Origin: Phyllobates terribilis | Taxonomy: Eukaryota | Direction: 5' to 3' | DNA: 64,000 nt | Assembly: GCF_046119375.1 (NCBI RefSeq) | Contig: NW_027362772.1 | Span: forward strand, 78,864,001-78,928,000 | Shown here: in pieces, positions 40,201 through 61,734 of the stretch | Numbering within the stretch: position 1 is the first letter of the stretch | How the letters are laid out: each line of letters begins with the position of its first letter | Translations under genes and position numbers: made by a program | The notes under the pieces: model-generated | The model's database searches: none | What the model was told of the DNA's origin: nothing | The model's input: the letters and a program-made list of their open reading frames with translations, nothing else

Positions 40201-42466
40201 CTGAAAGCTGCTTACTCTGCACTGACATTTTAGAACGTCAGTGCAGAGTTAAGGGAGGAGCATCCAGATTTCCATGGGGAGTCTGGCTGTGACTGACAGC
40301 CAGCTCCTTGCTCCCCCGCATAATCTCCTGAAAGTTGCTTACTCTGCACTTACATTTTAGAACGTCAGAGCAGAGTTAAGTGAGGACCGCTCAGATGTCC
40401 ATGGGGAGTCTGGCTGTGACTGACAGCCAGCTCCTTGCTTTCCCGCATAATCTCCTGAAAGTTGCTTACTCTGCACTGACAGACTTGGTAAAACTGGATT
40501 TCTTCTTTTCTAGGTGGACTCAAATCACGATCGCTTGGTGACGCTGGAAGAGTTCCTGAAATCTACAGAGAGGAAAGAGTTTAATGAGGCCGGAGGATGG
40601 GAGGTGAGGATGTAAATCGAGGGGCTCCAGACATTGATGGTAAATCCCAAGGAGAGGCCAACAAGGTGTCTGGTTTAGGAAGAGGAACTGAGATGAGGGG
40701 TGGACTGAAATGGGTAATGAAAGGAGAAAATTACTGAAACACAAACGAGATGTGACATACTGTATTGTACTCTACTGTACTCCGTGAGTCACATAATAGT
40801 CCATCAGTGAGCTCATTCTGATGAGGCGTTTTGTCACTCTTTGAACCCAGCTTTTTCTGAGCGGATTTATGATTACCGACCGCATCAAAGTTAAGCTGAA
40901 CTTTGATTTGGTCATAAATGAGCTGATTAGAGCTCAGAACATAACAGGTAAGAGTTAGAAACTCCCATCACAAGAGGCTCGCTGATGGATTCTCCGTTAA
41001 CTCAGGAAAAAAAAAAAAGCAAAGCAAAAGTTTGAATGAAACCTTTTTGCAAAAATTGTTAAACCCCAAATGCGTGCAATTACTAAAAAAGAATGGTGAT
41101 AAATATGGTATGTACAGCAATGCCGGGTTATCTAAGAATCTGCACAGGATTCACGTTGGTATATGGACGCTCACTCCCTTAATGACGGTGGAGATTTCAC
41201 CAGTATCCAGACCAGACTGTCCCTATAAGAGCATCGCATAGGTTGCACCGCCGACCGTTTTCTTTCTTTTTTTTTTCTTAGACTGTGGACGAGTCCCAAA
41301 TTTACACAGAAGATGAGCTGCGCAGGTTTGAGCAGGAGCTCGCCACCCAAGAAGCCGCCTTAATTCAGCGAGCGGAGGAGTTACGGAAAGAGCATGAAGT
41401 CCTACAGCAGAGGCAGATCGAGCTGGACGCTCAGAAGAAGGAGTACCAGCAGGTACGTAACGAGGTGGGCATCCAGCACCAGAAAGACCACCAAGATGAA
41501 GTCTAATGATGGGGGAGGGGGACTAAGACGTCTGATAGCGGTAGGATAACCTGGTTGTAGGTGACCGTACACAATTAAGAATCCCCACCTTTCTTTTAAG
41601 GCTTTGATCCAGATGGAGCAAAAGAAGTCGCAGCAGGCCGAAGCCCCCGGAGTGCCCGCCGCTGGACCCAACGGGGAACTGAAGTTCCAGCCTCAAGTAC
41701 CAGAAGGAGCCATCATACAAGGTATATAGTTACATGGCAGGACCAAAATATCGCAAAGACCCCCCCTCCCTAGTTTATTATTGAGATCCAATAAACTAAA
41801 ACCACTGGCGCTAACTGAGAGAACCTTACACGTTCCGGACCACCACAGGGTTAATATAAAAAATAAACTAGGCTATAATATAGGTATAATATCCCAAAGA
41901 TCAATTCACGATGACCTCAATAGATGTTGATGTACTAAATCCTAAAACTGGTAGTCCAGACACAACAACACTGCTGGACCTGGGGAGGGTGAATAAAGCA
42001 CAATTTATTTATGTTTATTACATGAGCCTCCAAGAGAATAAACCCCTTTTACTCAATGTAATTTGCCACCTCTCCAGTGTTGATGAATCGCCCCCATGTT
42101 TTTTTTAAGGCTTGTAAAAAATGTATTACATGTTTGTTTTTTTTATAAGCTGTTTTTTTCCCCTTTTTTTATTCCTATAGTGTTTAAGGAAATAAAAAAA
42201 ATGATTGGGCTTGTTGAATATCAGCATGCCCAGTCCTATGACACATAAGTGTCCGGCAGCACTTTAAAATCATGGGGGGTGGGTCGGTGTGCTACCTTTT
42301 GTCATATGTAATGAATACACGCATCATTCTCACCATTGTGTTAATAGATAAACCAGAAGAAGCCCACCAGGTGTCAGACATTCATCCACAACCTCCAGGA
42401 GATGTGGCCCACCCAGACACGAAAGATTCAGCGCCTTCCCAGGAACATCAGGTTCAGCAAGTCTAA
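31366..42466 (+). CDS. NUCB1: Nucleobindin-1 (calnuc), 12 coding exons, 460 aa, signal peptide + two EF-hands + coiled coil
   Basis: GT-AG exons read by hand: 31366-31473, 33178-33285, 35232-35364, 35613-35716, 38213-38398, 38524-38614, 38772-38830, 39358-39450, 40514-40603, 41282-41452, 41601-41721, 42348-42466. The sum is 1383 nt, in frame. Translation: [97 protein letters not shown]; EF-hands [12 protein letters not shown] and [28 protein letters not shown] residues are NUCB1-type rather than NUCB2-type. Confidence 0.97.
32255..32592. mobile_element. Tc1-derived MITE (long hairpin) in NUCB1 intron 2
   Basis: TA|CAGTTGTGCTCAAAAGTTTACATACC ... GGTATGTAAACTTTTGAGCACAACTG|TA; ~140-bp inverted arms. 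Confidence 0.9.
34164..34220. repeat. (TA)n microsatellite
   Basis: Direct reading. Confidence 0.95.
36407..38073. repeat. ~39-bp minisatellite in NUCB1 intron 5 with a duplicated unique tail
   Basis: Unit CACAGAGCTCACATCCAGCCTATATTACTGGGAGAGACA (shorter variants present); an 80-bp non-repeat tail occurs at 37511 and 37994. Confidence 0.95.
40160..40480. repeat. ~123-bp tandem repeat x3 in NUCB1 intron 9
   Basis: CTGGCTGTGACTGACAGCCAG recurs at ~40163, 40284 and 40410; partial copy at ~39615. Confidence 0.85.
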
Positions 42467-46521: not shown

Positions 46522-46749
46522 CTACATGTCCGCAACTGGATACGTGGTATTAGCATATAATCCAGCCCAGATGTTCTCTCTGTGATGAGGGTCCAGACAG
46601 AAGCCAATGGCGGCCTCCGTCTCGGCGATCCGTCTCTGGAAGCGGCTGCGGTCTCGGGCGTACATTTCCCATGGTCCTTTCCGGGCCATTCTGTGAGCAA
46701 AGCTCCAGGTAACGATGGGGTGGACTGTGACTTTGGATGAGAAGCGCAC
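46522..46749 (-). CDS. PPP1R15A: PPP1R15A last coding exon: PP1/eIF2alpha/actin-binding core (ICP34.5-like domain)
   Basis: Acceptor tttcag|GTG CGC TTC; spliced product reads KK|[42 protein letters not shown]. The RVxF, GPWE and ARDRSRF motifs are GADD34-type; NUCB1 is also a near neighbour of PPP1R15A in human. Confidence 0.95.
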
Positions 46750-47649: not shown

Positions 47650-48732
47650 TTTCTTGGTGCAGTGGTCGGCTTTGTCTGTGGCCTTCTCCTTGGGCAGCGT
47701 GCACTTGTGAGTAGACCTGTATCCAGACAGCACTGGCTTCTTATACAACTTATTCTTCAGTTTTGGCTTTTCGGTAACAGTCCCACATTCCATTTTGACA
47801 TCACAACATTCCGTAGCATCCAAAATCTGCTGCGTTTTGCGACTTTCGATGGAGACCTTCTTTGGCTGCTTGGGACCTTTTGTGGGCATGGCAAAAGAAA
47901 GCGGATTATACGGATCATCAGTGCGACAGAAGGATGCCCACAAGTCGTCGTTGTCTTCATGGGATGAATTACTCTCTTCATCCCAAGAGTCCTCATCAGA
48001 CCAATCACTTCCCTCTCCGAGGACCTCATCACACTGGGACCCTGGAGTCCAGGACTCCTGCATACCACTGTCCATAGACACCTCTTCTTGGGAGAAGTCT
48101 AAAGCTTTAACACTGTCCACTTCAGACTCCTCAGAGGAGTCCATCTCCTCCGTTGGCACACAGATCATGGACATGATGATTGGGTTGGTACAAGATGTTA
48201 GAAGAACCTCTTGCTTTAGCATCTCCTCACATCCACTGTCCACTTCCATCTTAGTGATATCTCCTACAGTCTCCATCGTTAGACTGCATATCTCCCCATC
48301 CATCATTTTCTCTGGCTCCATCTGACCTTCCCAGTGACACTTTATAGTGACCATATTCATTGGCTGCTCACTCTTAGACATGACCACCCTCCTCTTGTAA
48401 AGGTACACGCTCAGTAGTGGTAACAGAACGTCCAGAACACTCCAGCACACCACCACGACGGCACGCAAGGCCTTGCTCATGAAGATACGAGGTAGCATCG
48501 TCCAATACAAGGTACGTTTCTGCAGGAAGTTCTTGCCCAAAGAAATAATGGTCTGTAAGATCCTGGCGGCCATTGTGACTATAACCACGTCTGTGCCAAA
48601 GTCAGTGAGGACAACCGGCAACTGCAGATGATCTTTCAGAACGTCAAACTGGGAAGAGGTGCCTCTATGCCAGCAGGTTGGAGAAGTCCAGTTTTTCCAG
48701 TATACGCAAAAGTTGAGATGGTCCAGTCCCAT
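47650..48732 (-). CDS. PPP1R15A: PPP1R15A (GADD34) main coding exon (361 codons)
   Basis: Acceptor ttttagtattttacag|a-ATG (exon starts 48733). Open to donor AAA|GTAAGT at 47650/47649. Hydrophobic N-terminal region, acidic region and LWASFCRTDDPYNPLSF motif. A second, strong-Kozak ATG lies at 48573. Confidence 0.88.
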
Positions 48733-50049
48733 TCTGTAAAATACTAAAAAAATAGGCACGTTAGACTGTAGAATTAGAAAAGGGTCATAATCAATGAATA
48801 GATCGGTAGGACACACGACAACCCCACATGCTTAATGGCACACGTACTACTGCTCAATTCATGAAACAGTCATGGGGGGGGGGGTTTCAAGGATTGGACC
48901 CCATCGATTTGGTGGTTCAACTCCAATCCCACAAGACAAAAGCCTTTAAATATAATTTAGCGTTGTACTTAGGACTTCACAATGGTCACAACCAATATCC
49001 CACACGTCACTTTTTGGAGGAGTGGGTTGAGACAACCAGTACAGTGTAATCCCCAGATCAGAAATAGCTGATTCTCGTCCTTCAGTTTAAAGGGGTTGTC
49101 TCCTTTTAGAAACTCAATCTAAACACAAACTACTTCACTCACCCTACCTGAGACCACTGGCAAGTCTCTGCAGCATTGACATCACATCAACAGCGCTGCA
49201 GCCAATCACTGATCTGAGCAGGGCACTCCTTATACAGGCAGAGCTGCGACATGACATCAGACTGGGAATAGCAGTGGAGACTCATCAATACGAGCAAGGA
49301 TATTTCTTTAGATAAACTGCACTCAAGAGATTGCCTGTAATCCAGAAAATGCCAGTCTAATGGGTTGTGAGTGATTGAACATTAGTGCTGGGTCAGAGGA
49401 AATACCAGCTCAGCAATCATGTGTGCTGTGGTGCATTGTTCAAGTTATCACAACTATTGCACAATACAACCTGGACTACACCCGTGCTGCATGTGTCAGT
49501 CACATGGGACCTCATCAACCCTGAGAAGTCACCAGACATCCCATTCACTTCTGTTGTACAGAGGGGAGCGGTCAGTCACATCACCCAGATCTGGGTGAAG
49601 TTTCGCTATGAAACAGCTTCATCAGGGGGTCTCCAGTAGGAACAAGTTATCTTCAATCCACAGGAGCCCCATAAGGTTGATCATACTGCAGTCATTCTCT
49701 AAGGGGGCTACTGGGAAAAAAAAGCCAAGCACAGCAGCCCCATAGGGAATAAATGGAGCAGCAATGAAGTGTGGGCACTGCCAGGTATCAAGGGGCCATA
49801 GTCTGAAAAATCAGTGCAGGTCTCGGCAGTGGGGTCGTCATGGAGAAGGGGGTAACTTATTCGGGACCCATTTAAAAGGATATAAGCAACACCACTCCCC
49901 CCCAATCCCTGACAATGAATGAACTCACATCAGCCCCATAGAGAGGACAGTAAACATTTACTACATAGATACATTTGGATCAACCCCAGAAACGTAAAAA
50001 GTCATATCCAGTCAGTACTAGAAGTAGCAGCAATACCTCGCATACATAC

Positions 50050-50304
50050 CAGGGGGCGCTATCAGCCTGTGACCACGGCGCTCCAGCAGAAGTTAGCTAC
50101 GGTCTCCTGGGCGGGCGGCTCCTGGATATTCCGGTGGAGGCTGAGGGAGGCGGCGGGTCGCACTTCAGCTCTTCCGACTTGTCTCTTGGTCAGGACACAG
50201 CACATTGGGGAGAGACGGCGACTTGTGTGCGGAGAACAGCTATCGGTACCGGCCATACCTAGTCATTGGGATCTGTTATCGTTGTATTTGTAGGTAGAGT
50301 AAAA
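50050..50304 (-). other. PPP1R15A: Probable PPP1R15A exon 1 (5' leader with uORFs)
   Basis: Starts about 25-30 nt after TATATAAA (50336-50329) at an Inr/YY1-like CGCCATTTT; ends at donor CTG|GTATGT (50050/50049). An extra exon between 50049 and 48733 cannot be excluded. Confidence 0.7.
50062..50266 (-). promoter_or_regulatory. Upstream ORFs of PPP1R15A: uORF1 50266-50240 (MTRYGRYR*), uORF2 50256-50062 (64 aa, internal in-frame ATG at 50205)
   Basis: ATGs and stops read directly; mammalian GADD34 is known to be translationally controlled by uORFs. Confidence 0.7.
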
Positions 50305-50328
50305 TGGCGAAAGCGCTCCGGAGAGTGG

Positions 50329-50650
50329 TTTATATAGGATTCTGAACGGACCAATGAGAGAGCAGAAGGCGTGGCCGTCGGAAAATTACGTGACGTACGG
50401 CTCGTAGTTCAATAATGTGGGGAGAGAGCGTGTTACCAAGGGGACGGGGCGGAGCCGGAAACATCACGTGCTAAATATAGTAACGGTGACGTCAGGAGAG
50501 TCCAGAAATGATGGGAAATACTGGAAACTGTGTGATATCCAGGGGAAAGAGACGAGGAAATAACGTCGGGAAAGCCGAGGTGTCGCTTTACGGTCGTGCA
50601 ACGACTGGTATCAGTCACAGTGAGGAGGAAAACCCTCCATGTGTGACGTG
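50329..50650 (-). promoter_or_regulatory. PPP1R15A promoter: TATA, CCAAT, CRE/ATF sites, E-box
   Basis: TATATAAA 50336-50329; CCAAT 50351-50355; TTACGTGACGTA 50386-50397; CACGTG 50465-50470; perfect CRE TGACGTCA 50487-50494; TGACGTG 50644-50650. Confidence 0.8.
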
Positions 50651-50679: not shown

Positions 50680-53600
50680 CCCCCATAACATAGAGAACCC
50701 ATAACACAGAGATAACAAAAGACAGAGCCCCCATAACAGAGAGCCCCCATAACACAGGGACACAGAGCCCCCATAACACAGAGACAAAGAGCCCCCATAA
50801 CACAGACACAGAGCCCCCATAACACAGAGACACAGCCCCCATAACACAGACACAGAGCCCCCATAACACAGAGACACAGCCCCCATAACACAGGGACACA
50901 GAGCCCTCATAACACAGGGACACAGAGCCCTCATGACACAGAGCCCCCATAACACAGCCCCCATAAAACAGGGAGACAGACCCCATAACACAGAGCCCCC
51001 ATAACACAGGGAGACAGAGACCCCATAACACAGAGACACAGAGCCCCCACAACAGGGAGACAGACCCCATAACAGAAACACAGAGCCCCCATAACACAGG
51101 GAGACAGACCCCATAACACAGACACAGAGCCCCCATAGCACAGGGAGACAGAGCCCCCATAACACAAAGACCCCGAAACCTCATAACACAAGGAGACAGA
51201 GACCCTGTAACACAGAGACCACATAAGACAGAGAGAGAGAGCACCCATAACACAGAGAAACAGAGCCCCCATAACACAAGGAGACAGAGACCACATAAGA
51301 CAGAGAGACAGAGCCCCCATAACACAGGGAAACAGAGACCACATAAGACAGAGAGACAGAGCCCCCATAACACAGGGAGACAGACCCCATAACACAGAGA
51401 AACAGCCCCCATAGCACAGACACAGAGCCCCCATAACACAGAGATCCCATAACACAGGAAGACAGAGACCCCATAACACAAAGACACAAAGCCCCCATAA
51501 CATAGAGACACCGAGACCTCATAACACAGGGAGACAGAGACCCCATAACACAGAGACCACATAAGACAGAGAGACAGAGCCCCCATAACACAGAGACACC
51601 GAGACCTCAACACAGGGAGACAGAGACCACATAAGACAGAGAGACACAGAGCCCCCATAAGACAGAGACACAGACCCCATAACACAGAGACACAGAGCCC
51701 CCATAGCACAAAGAGACACAGAGACCCCATAACACAGGGAGACAGAGACCCCATAACACAGGGAGACAAAGCCCCCATAACACAGGAAGACAGGCCCTAT
51801 AACACAGAGAGACACAGAGCCCCCATAACACAGAGACCCCATAACATAGGGAGACAGAGACCCCATGACACATACACAGAGCTCCCATAACACAGAGACA
51901 AAGAGCCCCCATAACACAGAGAGACAGAGCCCCAATAAGCAGAGAGACACAGAGCCCCCATAACACCGGGGGACAGAGACCCCATGACACAGAGCCACCA
52001 TAAGACAGAGACACAGAGCACCCATAACACAGAGACACAGAGCCCCATAACACAGAGAGACAGAGCCCCCATAACACAGAGACACAGAGCCCCCATAACA
52101 CAGAGAGACAGAGCCCCCATAACACAGAGACACAGAGCTCCATAACTGAGAAACACAGAGCCCCCATAACACAGACACAGAGCTCCCATAACACAGAGAC
52201 AGAGCCCCCATAACAGAAAGAGACAGAGCCCTCATAACACAGAGCCCGCATAACAGAGACACAGAGCCCCCATAAGACAAACAGAGCCCCCATAACACAG
52301 ACAAAGCCCCCATAACAGAGCCCAAATAACAGAGACACAGAGCCCCCATAACACAGAGACACAGCTCCCATAACACAGACAGAGCCCCCATAACACAAAG
52401 ACACAGAGCCCCTATAACACAGAGACACCGAGACCTCATAACACAGGGAGATACAGACCACATAAGACAGAGAGACAGAGCCCCCATAGCACAGACACAG
52501 AGCCCCCATAGCACAAAGAGAAACAGAGCCCCCATAACACAGAGACCCCATAACACAGGGAGACAGAGCCCCCATAACACAGGGAGACAGGCCCCATAAC
52601 ACAGAAAGACACAGAGCCCCCATAACACAGACACAGAGCCCCCATAGCACATACACAGAGCTCCCATAACACAGGGAGACACAGAGCCCCCATAACACAG
52701 AGAGACAGAGCCCCCATAAGACAGAGCGACACAGAGTCCCCATAACACAGAGCCCCCATAAGACAGAGAGACACAGCCCCCATAGCACAGGGAGACGGAG
52801 ACCCCATGACACAGAGCCCCCAAAAGACAGACACAGAGCACCCATAACACAGAGACACAGAGCCCCTATAACACAGACACAGAGCCCCATAACACAGAGA
52901 CACCGAGACCCCATAACACAGAGAGACTGAGCCCCCATAACACAGACACAGAGCCCCCATAACGCAGAGACACAGAGCTCCATAACTGAGAAACACAGAG
53001 CCCCCATAACACAGACACAGAGCCCCCATAACACAGGGACACAGAGCCCCCATAACACAAAGAGACAGAGCCCCCATAACACAGAGCCCGCGTAACAGAG
53101 ACACAGAGCCCCCATAACACAGACAGAGCCCCCATAACACAGACAAAGCCCCCATAACACAGAGCCCCATAACACAGAGACACAGCTCCCATAAAAGAGA
53201 GACAGAGCACCCTTAAGACAGACACAGAGCCCCCATAACAGACACACAGCCCCCATAAGACAGAGACACAGAGCCCCCATAACAAAGAGACACAGAGCCC
53301 TCATAACAGTGAGACAGAACCCCATAACAGAGAGACACAGAGCCCTCATAATACAGAGCCCTCATAACAGACACAGAGCCCCCATAACACAGAGACACCG
53401 AGACCCCATAACACAGGGAGACAGAGACCCCATAACACAGAGACCACATAAGACAGAGAGAGCCCCCATAACAGAGAGGACAGAGCACCCATAACACAAA
53501 GACACAGAGCCCCCATAACAGAGACACCGAGACCTCATAAGACAGAGAGACACAGAGCCCCCATAACAGAGAGACACAGAGCCCCCATAATACAGAGCCC

Positions 53601-56138
53601 CCATAACAGAGACAGAGCCCCCATAACACAGAGACACCAAGACCTCATAACACAGGGAGACAGAGACCCCATAGCACAGAGACCACATAAGACAGAGAGA
53701 GAGAGAGCCCCCATAACACAGGGAGACAGAGACCACATAAGACAGAGAGACACAGAGCCCCCATAAGACAGAGACACAGAGCCCCCATAACACAGGGAGA
53801 CAGAAAACCCATAACAGAGACACAGAGCCCACATAACACAGGGAGACAGACCCCATAACACAGAGACACAGAGCCCCCATAGCACAAAGAGACACAGAGC
53901 CCCTATAACACAGAGACACAGTGCCCCCATAACACAGAGACCCCATAACACAGGGAGACAGCCCCCATAACACAGAGAGGTAGAGCCCCCATAACACAAA
54001 AACACAGAGCCCCCATAACACAGAGAGACAGAGCCCCCATAACACAAAGACACAGAGCCCCCATAACACAGAGACACCGAGACCTCATAACACAGGGAGA
54101 TGGAAACCACATAAGACAGAGAGACACAGAGTCGCCATAAGACAGAGACACAGAGTCCCCATAACACAGGGAGACAGAGACTCCATGACACAGAGCCCCC
54201 ATAACACAGAGCACCCATAACACAGAGGCACAGAACCCCCGTAACACAGAGACACAGAGCCCCCATAACACAGAGACACAGAGCCCCCGTAACACAGACT
54301 GAGGCCCCCATAACACAGAGACATAGAGCTCCATAACTGAGAAACACAGAGCCCCCATAACACAGACACAGAGCCCCCATAACACAGGGACACCGAGACC
54401 CCATAACACAGAGAGACAGAGCCCCCATAACACAAAGACACAGAGCCCCCATAACACAGAGACACCGAGACCTCATAACACAGGGAGATGGAGACCACAT
54501 AAGACAGAGAGACACAGAGTCACCATAAGACAGAGACACGGAGTCCCCATAACACAGGGAGACAGAGACCCCATAACAGAGACACAGAGCTCCCATAACA
54601 CAGGGAGACAGACCCCATAACACAGAGACACAGAGCCCCCATAGCACAGACACAGAGCCCCCATAGCACAAAGAGACACAGAGCCCCCATAACAAAGGGA
54701 GACAGAGACCCCATGACACAGAGCCCCCATAACACAGAGCACCCATAACACAGAGACACAGAACCCCCGTAACACAGAGACACAGAGCCCCCATAACACA
54801 GAGACACAGAGCCCCCGTAACACAGAGAGACTGAGGCCCCCATAACACAGAGACATAGAGCTCCATAACTGAGAAACACAGAGCCCCCATAACACAGACA
54901 CAGAGCCCCCATAACACAGGGACACAGAGCCCCCATAACACAAAGAGACAGCCCCCATAACACAGAGACACAGAGCCCGCATAGCAGAGACACAGAGCCC
55001 CATAACACAGACAGAGCCCCCATAACAGAGAGACACAAAGCCCCCATAACACAGACAAAGCCCCCATAACACAGAGCCCCATAACACAGAGACACAGAGC
55101 CCCCATAACACAGAGACACCGCTCCCATAAAAGAGACAGAGCCCCCTTAAGACAGAGACACAGAGCCCCCATAACAGAGACACAGCCCCCATAACACAGA
55201 GACAGAGCCCCCATAAGGCAGAGACACAGAGCCTCCATAACAAAGAGACACAGAGCCCTCATAACAGTGAGACAGAGCCCCCATAACGGAGAGACACAGA
55301 GCACCCATAACACAGATACACCGAGACCCCATAACACAGAGACACAGAGCCCTCATAAGACAGAGAGACACAGAGCCCCCATAACACAGGGAGACAGACC
55401 CCATAACACAGAGACACAGAGCCCCCTTAAGACAGAGACACAGCCCCCATAACACAGAGACACAGAGCCCCCATAACACAGGGAGACAGAGACCCCATAA
55501 CGCAAAGACACAAAGCCCCCATAACACAGAGACACCGAGACCTCATAACACAGGGAGACAGAGCCCCCATAACACAGAGACACATAGCCCCCATAACATA
55601 AAGACTCAGAACCGCCATAACACAGAGACACAGAGCCCCCATAACACAGAAACCCCATAACACAGGGAGACAGAGCCCCCATAACACAGGGAGACAGAGA
55701 CCCTATAACACAAAGCCCCCATAACACAGAGACACCGAGACCTCATAACACAGGGAGACAGAGACCACATAAGACAGAGAGACACAGAGCCGCCATAAGA
55801 CCGAGACCACATAAGACAGAGAGACAGAGCCCCCATAACACAGAGACACCGAGACCTCATAACACAGGGAGACAGAGACCACATAAGACAGAGAGACACA
55901 GAGCCCCCATAACACAGAGACCACATAAGACAGAGAGAGAGCCCCCATAACACAAAGACACAGAGCCCCCATAACACAGACACCGAGACCTCATAACACA
56001 GGGAGACAGAGACCACATAAGACAGAGAGACACAGAGCCCCCATAAGACAGAGACACAGAGCCCCCATAACAGAGGGAGACAGAGACCCCATAACAGAGA
56101 CACAGAGCCCCCATAACACAGGGAGACAGACCCCATAA
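50680..56138. repeat. Complex modular satellite (ACACAGAGCCCCCATAAC core), left block
   Basis: About 5.5 kb of shuffled modules (GAGAC, CAGGGAGACA, ACCACATAAGAC, CCGAGACCTC); nearly T-free on the + strand apart from the ATA core. Confidence 0.97.
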
Positions 56139-61168: not shown

Positions 61169-61734
61169 ATAACACAGAGACACAGAGCCCCCATAGCACA
61201 AAGAGACACTTAGCCCCCATAACATAGAAACACAGAGCCCCCATAACACAGAGACACAGAGCCCCCATAACATAGAGACCCCATAACACAGGGAGACAGA
61301 GCCCCCATAACACAGGGAGATGGGCCCCATAACAGAGAGACGCAGAGCCCCCATAACACAGACACAGAGACCCCATGACACATACACAGAGCTCCCATAA
61401 CACAGAGAGACACAGAGCCCCCATAGCAGAGAGAGACAGAGCCCCCATAACACACTGAGACAGAGACCCCATGACACAGAGCCCCCATAAGACAGAGACA
61501 CAGAGCACCCATAACACAGAGACACAGAACCCCTGTAACACAGACACAGAGCCCCCATAACACAGAGACACAGAGCCCCATAACACAGAGAGACAGAGCC
61601 CCCATAACACAGAGCCTCCATAACAGAGACACATAGCCCCCATAACACAGACACAGAGCCCCCATAACACAGAAACTAAGAGCCCTCATAGCACAGAGAC
61701 ACAGAGCCCCCATAACACAGAGAGACAGAGCCCC
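61169..61734. repeat. Same satellite, right block
   Basis: Resumes immediately after the CR1 tail; ends at the LTR. Confidence 0.97.

Follow-up and report, generated by a model that had tools for sequence, protein, structure and literature searches.

GADD34, encoded by PPP1R15A, completes the feedback circuit of the integrated stress response. To our knowledge, the control that upstream open reading frames (uORFs) exert over GADD34, although a textbook case, has been described only in mammals, in which it depends on a uORF of 26 codons with Pro-Pro-Gly at its end. A minus-strand gene in the window analyzed here, a stretch of 64,000 nucleotides from Phyllobates terribilis (contig NW_027362772.1, positions 78,864,001 to 78,928,000, numbered below from its first letter), raises the question of how frogs restrain the translation of the same protein. 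An earlier note on this DNA had read the gene as frog GADD34 and had proposed that three upstream ATGs in its leader operate by delayed re-initiation, as in ATF4. Our finding is that the leader is a deeply conserved three-AUG design built around a frog-specific, conserved-peptide uORF.

In order to establish the identity of the gene, its protein was searched exon by exon and by reference; all spliced distances given here were obtained by arithmetic on coordinates. Exons 2 and 3 both match the PP1c_bdg domain (Pfam PF10488), with E values of 6e-9 and 1.7e-14, respectively, and a KVRF motif, an RVxF-type PP1 docking motif, is encoded at the junction between the two exons. The closest proteins are of the PPP1R15A type and come from dendrobatids (Ranitomeya imitator, 79% identity; Dendrobates tinctorius, 78%), with other frogs next, down to Xenopus. 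The public names of the closest frog proteins vary between 15A and 15B, a doubt that is settled by gene order and by the existence of a distinct PPP1R15B. On the plus strand of the window, convergent with PPP1R15A, is an exon (41595-41735) similar to the final coding exon of NUCB1, and NUCB1 is also the convergent downstream neighbor of PPP1R15A in Engystomops, Mixophyes and the sawfish Pristis. A ferritin gene is found upstream of the orthologue in Dendrobates. The human gene lies at 19q13.33, flanked by NUCB1 and FTL. Frog PPP1R15B is a separate protein of 627 amino acids, is encoded on another chromosome and scores far lower. Judged by its sequence, this gene on the minus strand is orthologous to PPP1R15A (GADD34), and the identification in the earlier note is borne out by the PP1c_bdg domain, the frog PPP1R15A matches and the adjacent NUCB1.

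A tandem PPP1R15A paralogue was sought in the window and rejected, the gene being single-copy there. Pipids (X. tropicalis, Hymenochirus and probably X. laevis) have adjacent duplicate PPP1R15A-type genes (L011; P0019/P0023, P0022/P0027), and the Xenopus leader used below was taken from one copy only. The start methionine and the N-terminal sequence of the coding sequence (CDS) are kept in the frog orthologues. Further into the protein, the 17 frog proteins aligned all have Met54-Ala55 (48573-48571, minus strand), and the ATG has a strong context (acaATGg); Met54 could be a second start giving rise to an N-terminally shorter GADD34. A 24-bp minisatellite of about 234 copies occupies 50736-56138 and 61169-61734 of the window, beginning approximately 430 bp upstream of the PPP1R15A start site, and similar repeats lie upstream of the Dendrobates gene (L002).

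Whether the upstream ATGs belong to the mRNA depends on where transcription starts and how the leader is spliced. About half of the sampled words of 47650-50340 were present in eight public runs from one organism, which is the expectation for exons without introns. RNA contigs from four of the eight runs, representing two studies, were compared with the window. All four contain the GT..AG joints 50050 to 48743 and 47650 to 46749, and none differs from the window in exon 1. Their 5' ends fall at 50300-50302 in every run, 30 nt below a TATA box, TATATAAA (50329-50336, minus strand, with TATATAA at 50336-50330), which is located 31 nt 5' of the predicted start and at -30/-31 in 11 frogs. An Inr-like CCATTTT, conserved among frogs, puts the likely +1 at the A at 50305. 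Exon 1 would accordingly extend from this A to 50050 (50050-50305, minus strand) as a non-coding leader. Contigs alone cannot prove a 5' end; the agreement of the four, the TATA/Inr geometry and the near-zero RNA coverage upstream of the start together make a start downstream of the upstream ATGs very unlikely. Since the contigs begin at 50300-50302, and not downstream of 50240, all three upstream ATGs lie within the mRNA, as the earlier note had supposed.

Intron 1 (48744-50049, minus strand, GT..AG) is defined by the 48743/50050 joint in four runs from the two studies. Exon 2 (47650-48743, minus strand), delimited by RNA joints and itself matching PP1c_bdg, opens with 11 nt of leader followed by the CDS ATG at 48732-48730, whose context is strong (agaATGg), and not weak, given the acceptor at 48743. 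Joined to it at 46749/47650 is the coding part of exon 3 (46522-46749, minus strand), which contains KVRF and the PP1c-binding domain and has its stop codon at 46524-46522. The leader thus totals 256 nt of exon 1 and 11 nt of exon 2. There is no additional leader exon, but the junction of 50050 to 48733 predicted in the earlier note, and with it the assumed spacing, does not hold: the acceptor lies 10 nt upstream, so that the TGA of the second uORF is 23 nt, and not 13 nt, from the CDS ATG. The acceptor at 48733 was used in none of the four contigs and is at best a possible minor form, as contigs drop rare variants. The conserved acceptor is confirmed by RNA in three species, namely the window species, the frog of transcript contig L007 and X. 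tropicalis (L012), and the X. tropicalis transcript contig includes all three upstream AUGs.

Several other features were observed around the start site. Upstream of the TATA box are a CRE/ATF-like sequence, TGACGTCA (50494-50487, minus strand), and an inverted CCAAT box (ATTGG, 50355-50351, minus strand). In several other frogs an ACGTCA-type site immediately precedes the TATA box on its 5' side, where Xenopus has TGAGTCA, and all of these sites are possible stress-response promoter elements. Within intron 1, a stretch of about 30 nt (49167-49212) recurs in each of the four runs as part of contigs that are well covered but unrelated, the match having loose ends to either side; the stretch most likely derives from a dispersed repeat or from a different transcript.

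The three upstream ATGs can be read directly in the sequence, with the positions, frames, lengths and contexts that had been reported for them; all lie on the minus strand. uATG1, at 50266, has a weak context (cccaATGa, with C at -3 and A at +4) and opens uORF1 (50240-50266), which consists of 8 codons and a TAG at 50242-50240. uORF1 is out of frame with uORF2 and spans its start codon, uATG2, at 50256, whose context is strong (aggtATGg, with G at -3 and G at +4). uORF2 (50062-50256) comprises 64 codons and a TGA at 50064-50062, and its last residues are VVTG-stop, without Pro-Pro-Gly, also as previously described. ATG3 (50203-50205) lies in frame inside uORF2, in a weak context and 34 nt past the uORF1 stop, and the CDS AUG is 201 nt from that same stop. 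A second stop codon, TAG at 50061-50059, directly follows the uORF2 TGA. This tandem, which the earlier note had pointed out, is real, but we rejected it as a feature of the design because it occurs only in the window species and Ranitomeya. An excess or depletion of ATGs in the leader was likewise rejected: there are three in the 256-nt leader versus 2.3-4.4 in shuffled leaders, the chance expectation. The count alone is therefore uninformative, and it is the conservation of position, frame and context across 11 frogs that exceeds chance.

For this comparison, loci from nine other frogs, one second frog transcript contig, and X. tropicalis genomic and transcript sequence were used, the comparison covering 11 related frog species including Xenopus, without a ranoid leader. 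Exon 1 is recognizable by blastn in all frogs compared. Its nucleotide identity across Hyloidea is 74-84%, and blastn similarity to Xenopus is confined to the last ~70 nt of uORF2, ending at the TGA. The alignment of anuran leaders that the earlier note had suggested shows all three ATGs to be kept from Xenopus to dendrobatids. In each of the 11 species, exon 1 is 256-278 nt long, and a weak uATG1 (C at -3) precedes a strong uATG2 (G at -3, G at +4) by precisely 10 nt. Every species has a uORF1 of 6-8 codons that stops between uATG2 and ATG3, 25-34 nt before the latter. uORF2 has 61-65 codons throughout, and ATG3 is in frame with it in 11 of 11, forming the sole invariant internal ATG column of the alignment. 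Finally, the acceptor lies ~11 nt before a strong CDS ATG, and the uORF2 stop is separated from the CDS by 16-33 nt, again in all 11 frogs. The 14-nt block containing uATG1 and uATG2 is invariant at 11 of 14 columns, versus 2 of 57 and 3 of 47 in its flanks. In Xenopus, the 8 codons of uORF1 are kept amid diverged sequence and end in a TAA stop. X. tropicalis also has a fourth upstream ATG within the end of uORF2 (L011:7352-7421 / L012:154-223), which opens an out-of-frame ORF of 3 codons and is absent in the other ten frogs.

The strongest signal in the leader, which was missed by the earlier note, is selection at the level of the uORF2 peptide. The uORF2 translations can be aligned in all frogs, from a start of M-A-x-T-D-S through an internal M-C-C-V-L-S-K to a common C-terminus, H-R-N-I-Q-E-P-P-A-Q-E-T-x-x-N-F-C-W-S-A-V-V-T-G-stop. 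The ending is V-[TSP]-G-stop across frogs, with threonine in nine of the 11 species, and the codons for V-T-G vary between species at wobble positions. The last 26 codons (50062-50139, minus strand; ...NIQEPPAQET..NFCWSAVVTG-stop in the window) are the most strongly constrained part. Summed over species pairs, dN/dS for these codons is 0.15 in the uORF2 frame versus 1.54 and 1.60 in the shifted frames, and stop codons number zero in frame versus 5 and 9 when shifted. Because of this difference, uORF2 is, on the evidence of its substitutions, a conserved-peptide uORF under purifying selection on amino acids. Constraint is also divided along its length, with pairwise dN/dS of ~0.2-0.5 from ATG3 to the stop versus ~0.7-1.1 from uATG2 to ATG3. 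This split at ATG3 implies that the selected product is the part downstream of ATG3, above all the C-terminus, and that uATG2 merely feeds ribosomes into the frame. RNA structure was considered as a cause of the conservation and rejected: the leader folds with a z score of +1.06 and is equalled or surpassed in stability by 172 of 200 shuffles, so that an ordinary fold energy does not explain it.

The uORF2 peptide has no Pfam match, and no relative was found among 5.8 billion predicted proteins, where uORFs are rarely annotated; this null therefore says nothing about how the peptide is distributed. A six-frame profile HMM search for it in 10 kb upstream of the orthologue of the sawfish Pristis gave a best E of 0.5, and exon 1 may lie farther away or be different in that species. 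Comparison of the frog peptide with the human uORF2 peptide, as printed in PMC9648851, by local and C-terminal alignment was no better than shuffles (p 0.30, 0.95 and 0.68), and homology between the two was rejected. No paper on PPP1R15A uORFs in amphibians was found in a literature search.

The leader of the frog gene nonetheless shares its layout with that of mammalian PPP1R15A. In both, non-coding exon 1 carries the uORFs, and a small uORF is followed by a second one, dominant and inhibitory in mammals, that stops shortly before the CDS AUG and does not overlap it; 23 nt separate the two in the window, and 16-33 nt across the 11 frogs. The accepted mechanism in mammals is that uORF2 represses as a barrier and that ribosomes pass it by under eIF2alpha phosphorylation; its Pro-Pro-Gly-stop prevents re-initiation (PMC9971878). 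In the mouse, the uORF1 stop shares one nucleotide with the uORF2 start (PMC12119373), and an overlapping pair of uORFs is thus not new for GADD34. It was also reported that lowering eIF2B activity in mouse cells without eIF2alpha phosphorylation induces ATF4 but not GADD34, a condition that tells the two mechanisms apart (PMC12119373). The product of the human PPP1R15A uORF has been classed as evolutionarily young (PMC10032668). The two leaders differ in the uORF2 itself, which has 61-65 codons in frogs versus 26 in humans (PMC9648851) and ends in VTG-stop rather than Pro-Pro-Gly-stop, the latter being absent from the uORF2 C-terminus in all 11 frogs. Frog uORF2 furthermore has a strong start, unlike its mammalian counterpart, and a conserved internal in-frame AUG that mammalian uORF2 does not have. 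Also unlike mammals, frog uORF1 shares 17 nt with uORF2 and starts 10 nt upstream of uAUG2.

We consider it probable that uORF2 acts as a peptide-dependent barrier, nearest in design to the uORF of CHOP (DDIT3), and that the conserved uORF1 and ATG3 are accessory to it. Its strong AUG and considerable length, the short spacer behind it and constraint that rises toward the stop together argue for a cis-acting barrier in which the nascent peptide would act within the ribosome. Most scanning ribosomes would initiate at uAUG2, make the conserved C-terminal peptide and then either stall at the stop codon of uORF2 or drop off after it; we infer the stalling by analogy. The length of uORF2 and the short spacer behind it would leave little chance of re-initiation, and synthesis of GADD34 would be kept low. 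The CDS would be reached only by ribosomes that start at neither uAUG2 nor AUG3. Upon phosphorylation of eIF2alpha, fewer initiation complexes would load and a larger share of them would be expected to bypass the barrier and reach the CDS, interference being relieved in the way already put forward for mammalian GADD34 and CHOP and in the ICIER model. uORF1 would take a minority of ribosomes past uAUG2, and AUG3 would return some of these, along with some leaky scanners, to the inhibitory frame; these relative fluxes are predicted shares. Leaky scanning past so strong a uAUG2 should be slight, and simple bypass might not suffice by itself, so that a route through uORF1 could contribute. Alternatively, the uORF2 peptide may be conserved for something that it does after its release.

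In CHOP, the peptide encoded by the uORF makes ribosomes stall and obstructs the scanning complexes behind them, a block that is relieved under eIF2alpha phosphorylation, and in the ICIER model it is long, efficiently initiated and slowly decoded uORFs that give the greatest stress resistance (PMC6033536). That preference appears to fit frog uORF2 better than the 26-codon mammalian uORF. Like the frog leader as we read it, that of CHOP has a single inhibitory uORF near the CDS. The CHOP uORF belongs to a different gene, however, has 34 codons and poor-context starts, in contrast to the strong uAUG2 of frogs, and is without an overlapping upstream uORF; its stalling is experimental, whereas that of frog uORF2 is predicted. 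In 2011 Palam et al. reportedly described two in-frame AUGs in the CHOP uORF. More broadly, frog uORF2 resembles conserved-peptide uORFs and arrest peptides (AAP, AMD1, hCMV gp48 uORF2 and plant conserved-peptide uORFs) in its amino-acid conservation over a wide taxon and in the concentration of constraint at the C-terminus beside the stop, the pattern that suggests stalling in frogs. An animal-wide survey of conserved-peptide uORFs exists (PMC7530721).

The proposal of the earlier note, delayed re-initiation of the ATF4/GCN4 type, is the most serious alternative, and we regard it as possible though rather doubtful. Ribosomes that use uORF1 would skip uAUG2 and then re-initiate at AUG3 in unstressed cells, or at the CDS when eIF2alpha is phosphorylated. 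ATF4 and GCN4 share with the frog gene a short 5'-proximal uORF followed by an inhibitory frame and then the CDS, and all are genes of the integrated stress response. Conservation of all three ATGs from Xenopus to dendrobatids is what a working three-AUG device would predict, and the accompanying geometry (uATG1 at its 10-nt offset, a short uORF1 stopping between uATG2 and ATG3, and ATG3 itself) is present in 11 of 11 frogs. The invariance of 11 of 14 columns in the block of uATG1 and uATG2, compared with 2 of 57 and 3 of 47 in the flanks, points the same way, as does the Xenopus uORF1, whose 8 codons persist with a different stop codon, TAA, despite divergence. A strong uAUG2 would also make a detour around it useful, and between the uORF1 stop and the CDS AUG there are 201 nt, enough for the ternary complex to be re-acquired.

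Yet the details of the frog leader depart from those of ATF4 and GCN4, in which uORF1 is used by most ribosomes. The frog uORF1 is short, with 6-8 codons, but the context of uATG1 is weak (C at -3) in all 11 species, and only a minority of ribosomes would be expected to start there. The gap from uORF1 to the inhibitory start is ~90 nt in ATF4; in frogs the next AUG after uORF1, the weak ATG3, comes after 25-34 nt and would mostly be passed even in unstressed cells. That would make uORF1 a constitutive route and not a stress-sensing one. The inhibitory uORF overlaps the CDS out of frame in ATF4 and ATF5, although not in GCN4, whereas frog uORF2 stops 23 nt short of the CDS AUG and, unlike the inhibitory frames of ATF4 and GCN4, has its own strong AUG within uORF1. 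The methionine of ATG3 sits in the conserved peptide, and thus the invariance of ATG3 needs no role as a start codon. Loss of uORF1 also had little effect in human reporters (PMC8729766; PMC11510332).

An intermediate arrangement, which we think unlikely, would combine the two mechanisms. The strong-AUG, arrest-peptide uORF2 might be nearly impassable by leaky scanning, with uORF1 as the main route to the CDS and AUG3 as a stress-sensitive point of recapture, so that ATF4 logic would be superimposed on a lineage-specific arrest peptide. If so, GADD34 would have changed its mechanism of translational control between amphibians and mammals.

The product of uORF2, of 48-65 residues, might alternatively be a small protein that functions in trans, making the mRNA effectively bicistronic and any effect on GADD34 secondary, which we consider improbable. 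Purifying selection on the encoded peptide, the conserved cysteine-containing motifs MCCVLSK and NFCW and the strong context of uAUG2 are all consistent with such a protein. Its constraint, however, rises most sharply over the last ~26 residues and extends up to the stop codon itself, a pattern typical of peptides that act in the exit tunnel (CHOP, AAP, gp48), and the conserved spacing of 16-33 nt to the CDS AUG would be needless for a product acting in trans. Against it, too, are the lack of a Pfam match and of a relative among the 5.8 billion predicted proteins, though uORFs are seldom annotated there. Conservation at the nucleic-acid level (a promoter-proximal DNA element, an RNA structure or an IRES, with the ATGs as passengers) is disfavoured and very improbable, for although exon 1 lies directly on the promoter and is 74-84% identical across Hyloidea, its substitutions follow the codon phase of uORF2 only (dN/dS 0.15 versus ~1.5), the similarity ends at the TGA and the fold is ordinary (z +1.06, with 172 of 200 shuffles at least as stable).

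If uORF2 is a peptide-dependent barrier, frogs would keep the logic of mammalian GADD34 control, a barrier uORF placed just before the CDS and after a small overlapping uORF. Frogs probably brake GADD34 translation with a peptide that differs from that of mammals; it exceeds the mammalian one more than twofold in length and has been kept ever since the pipid and neobatrachian lineages separated. Its C-terminus, ...EPPAQET..NFCWSAVVTG-stop, is a new candidate arrest peptide. The leader also provides, in natural form, a three-AUG design with which simple mutants would separate bypass from delayed re-initiation. Taken with the mammalian gene, the frog leader suggests that the position and role of a uORF can be conserved while the peptide that determines its action turns over.
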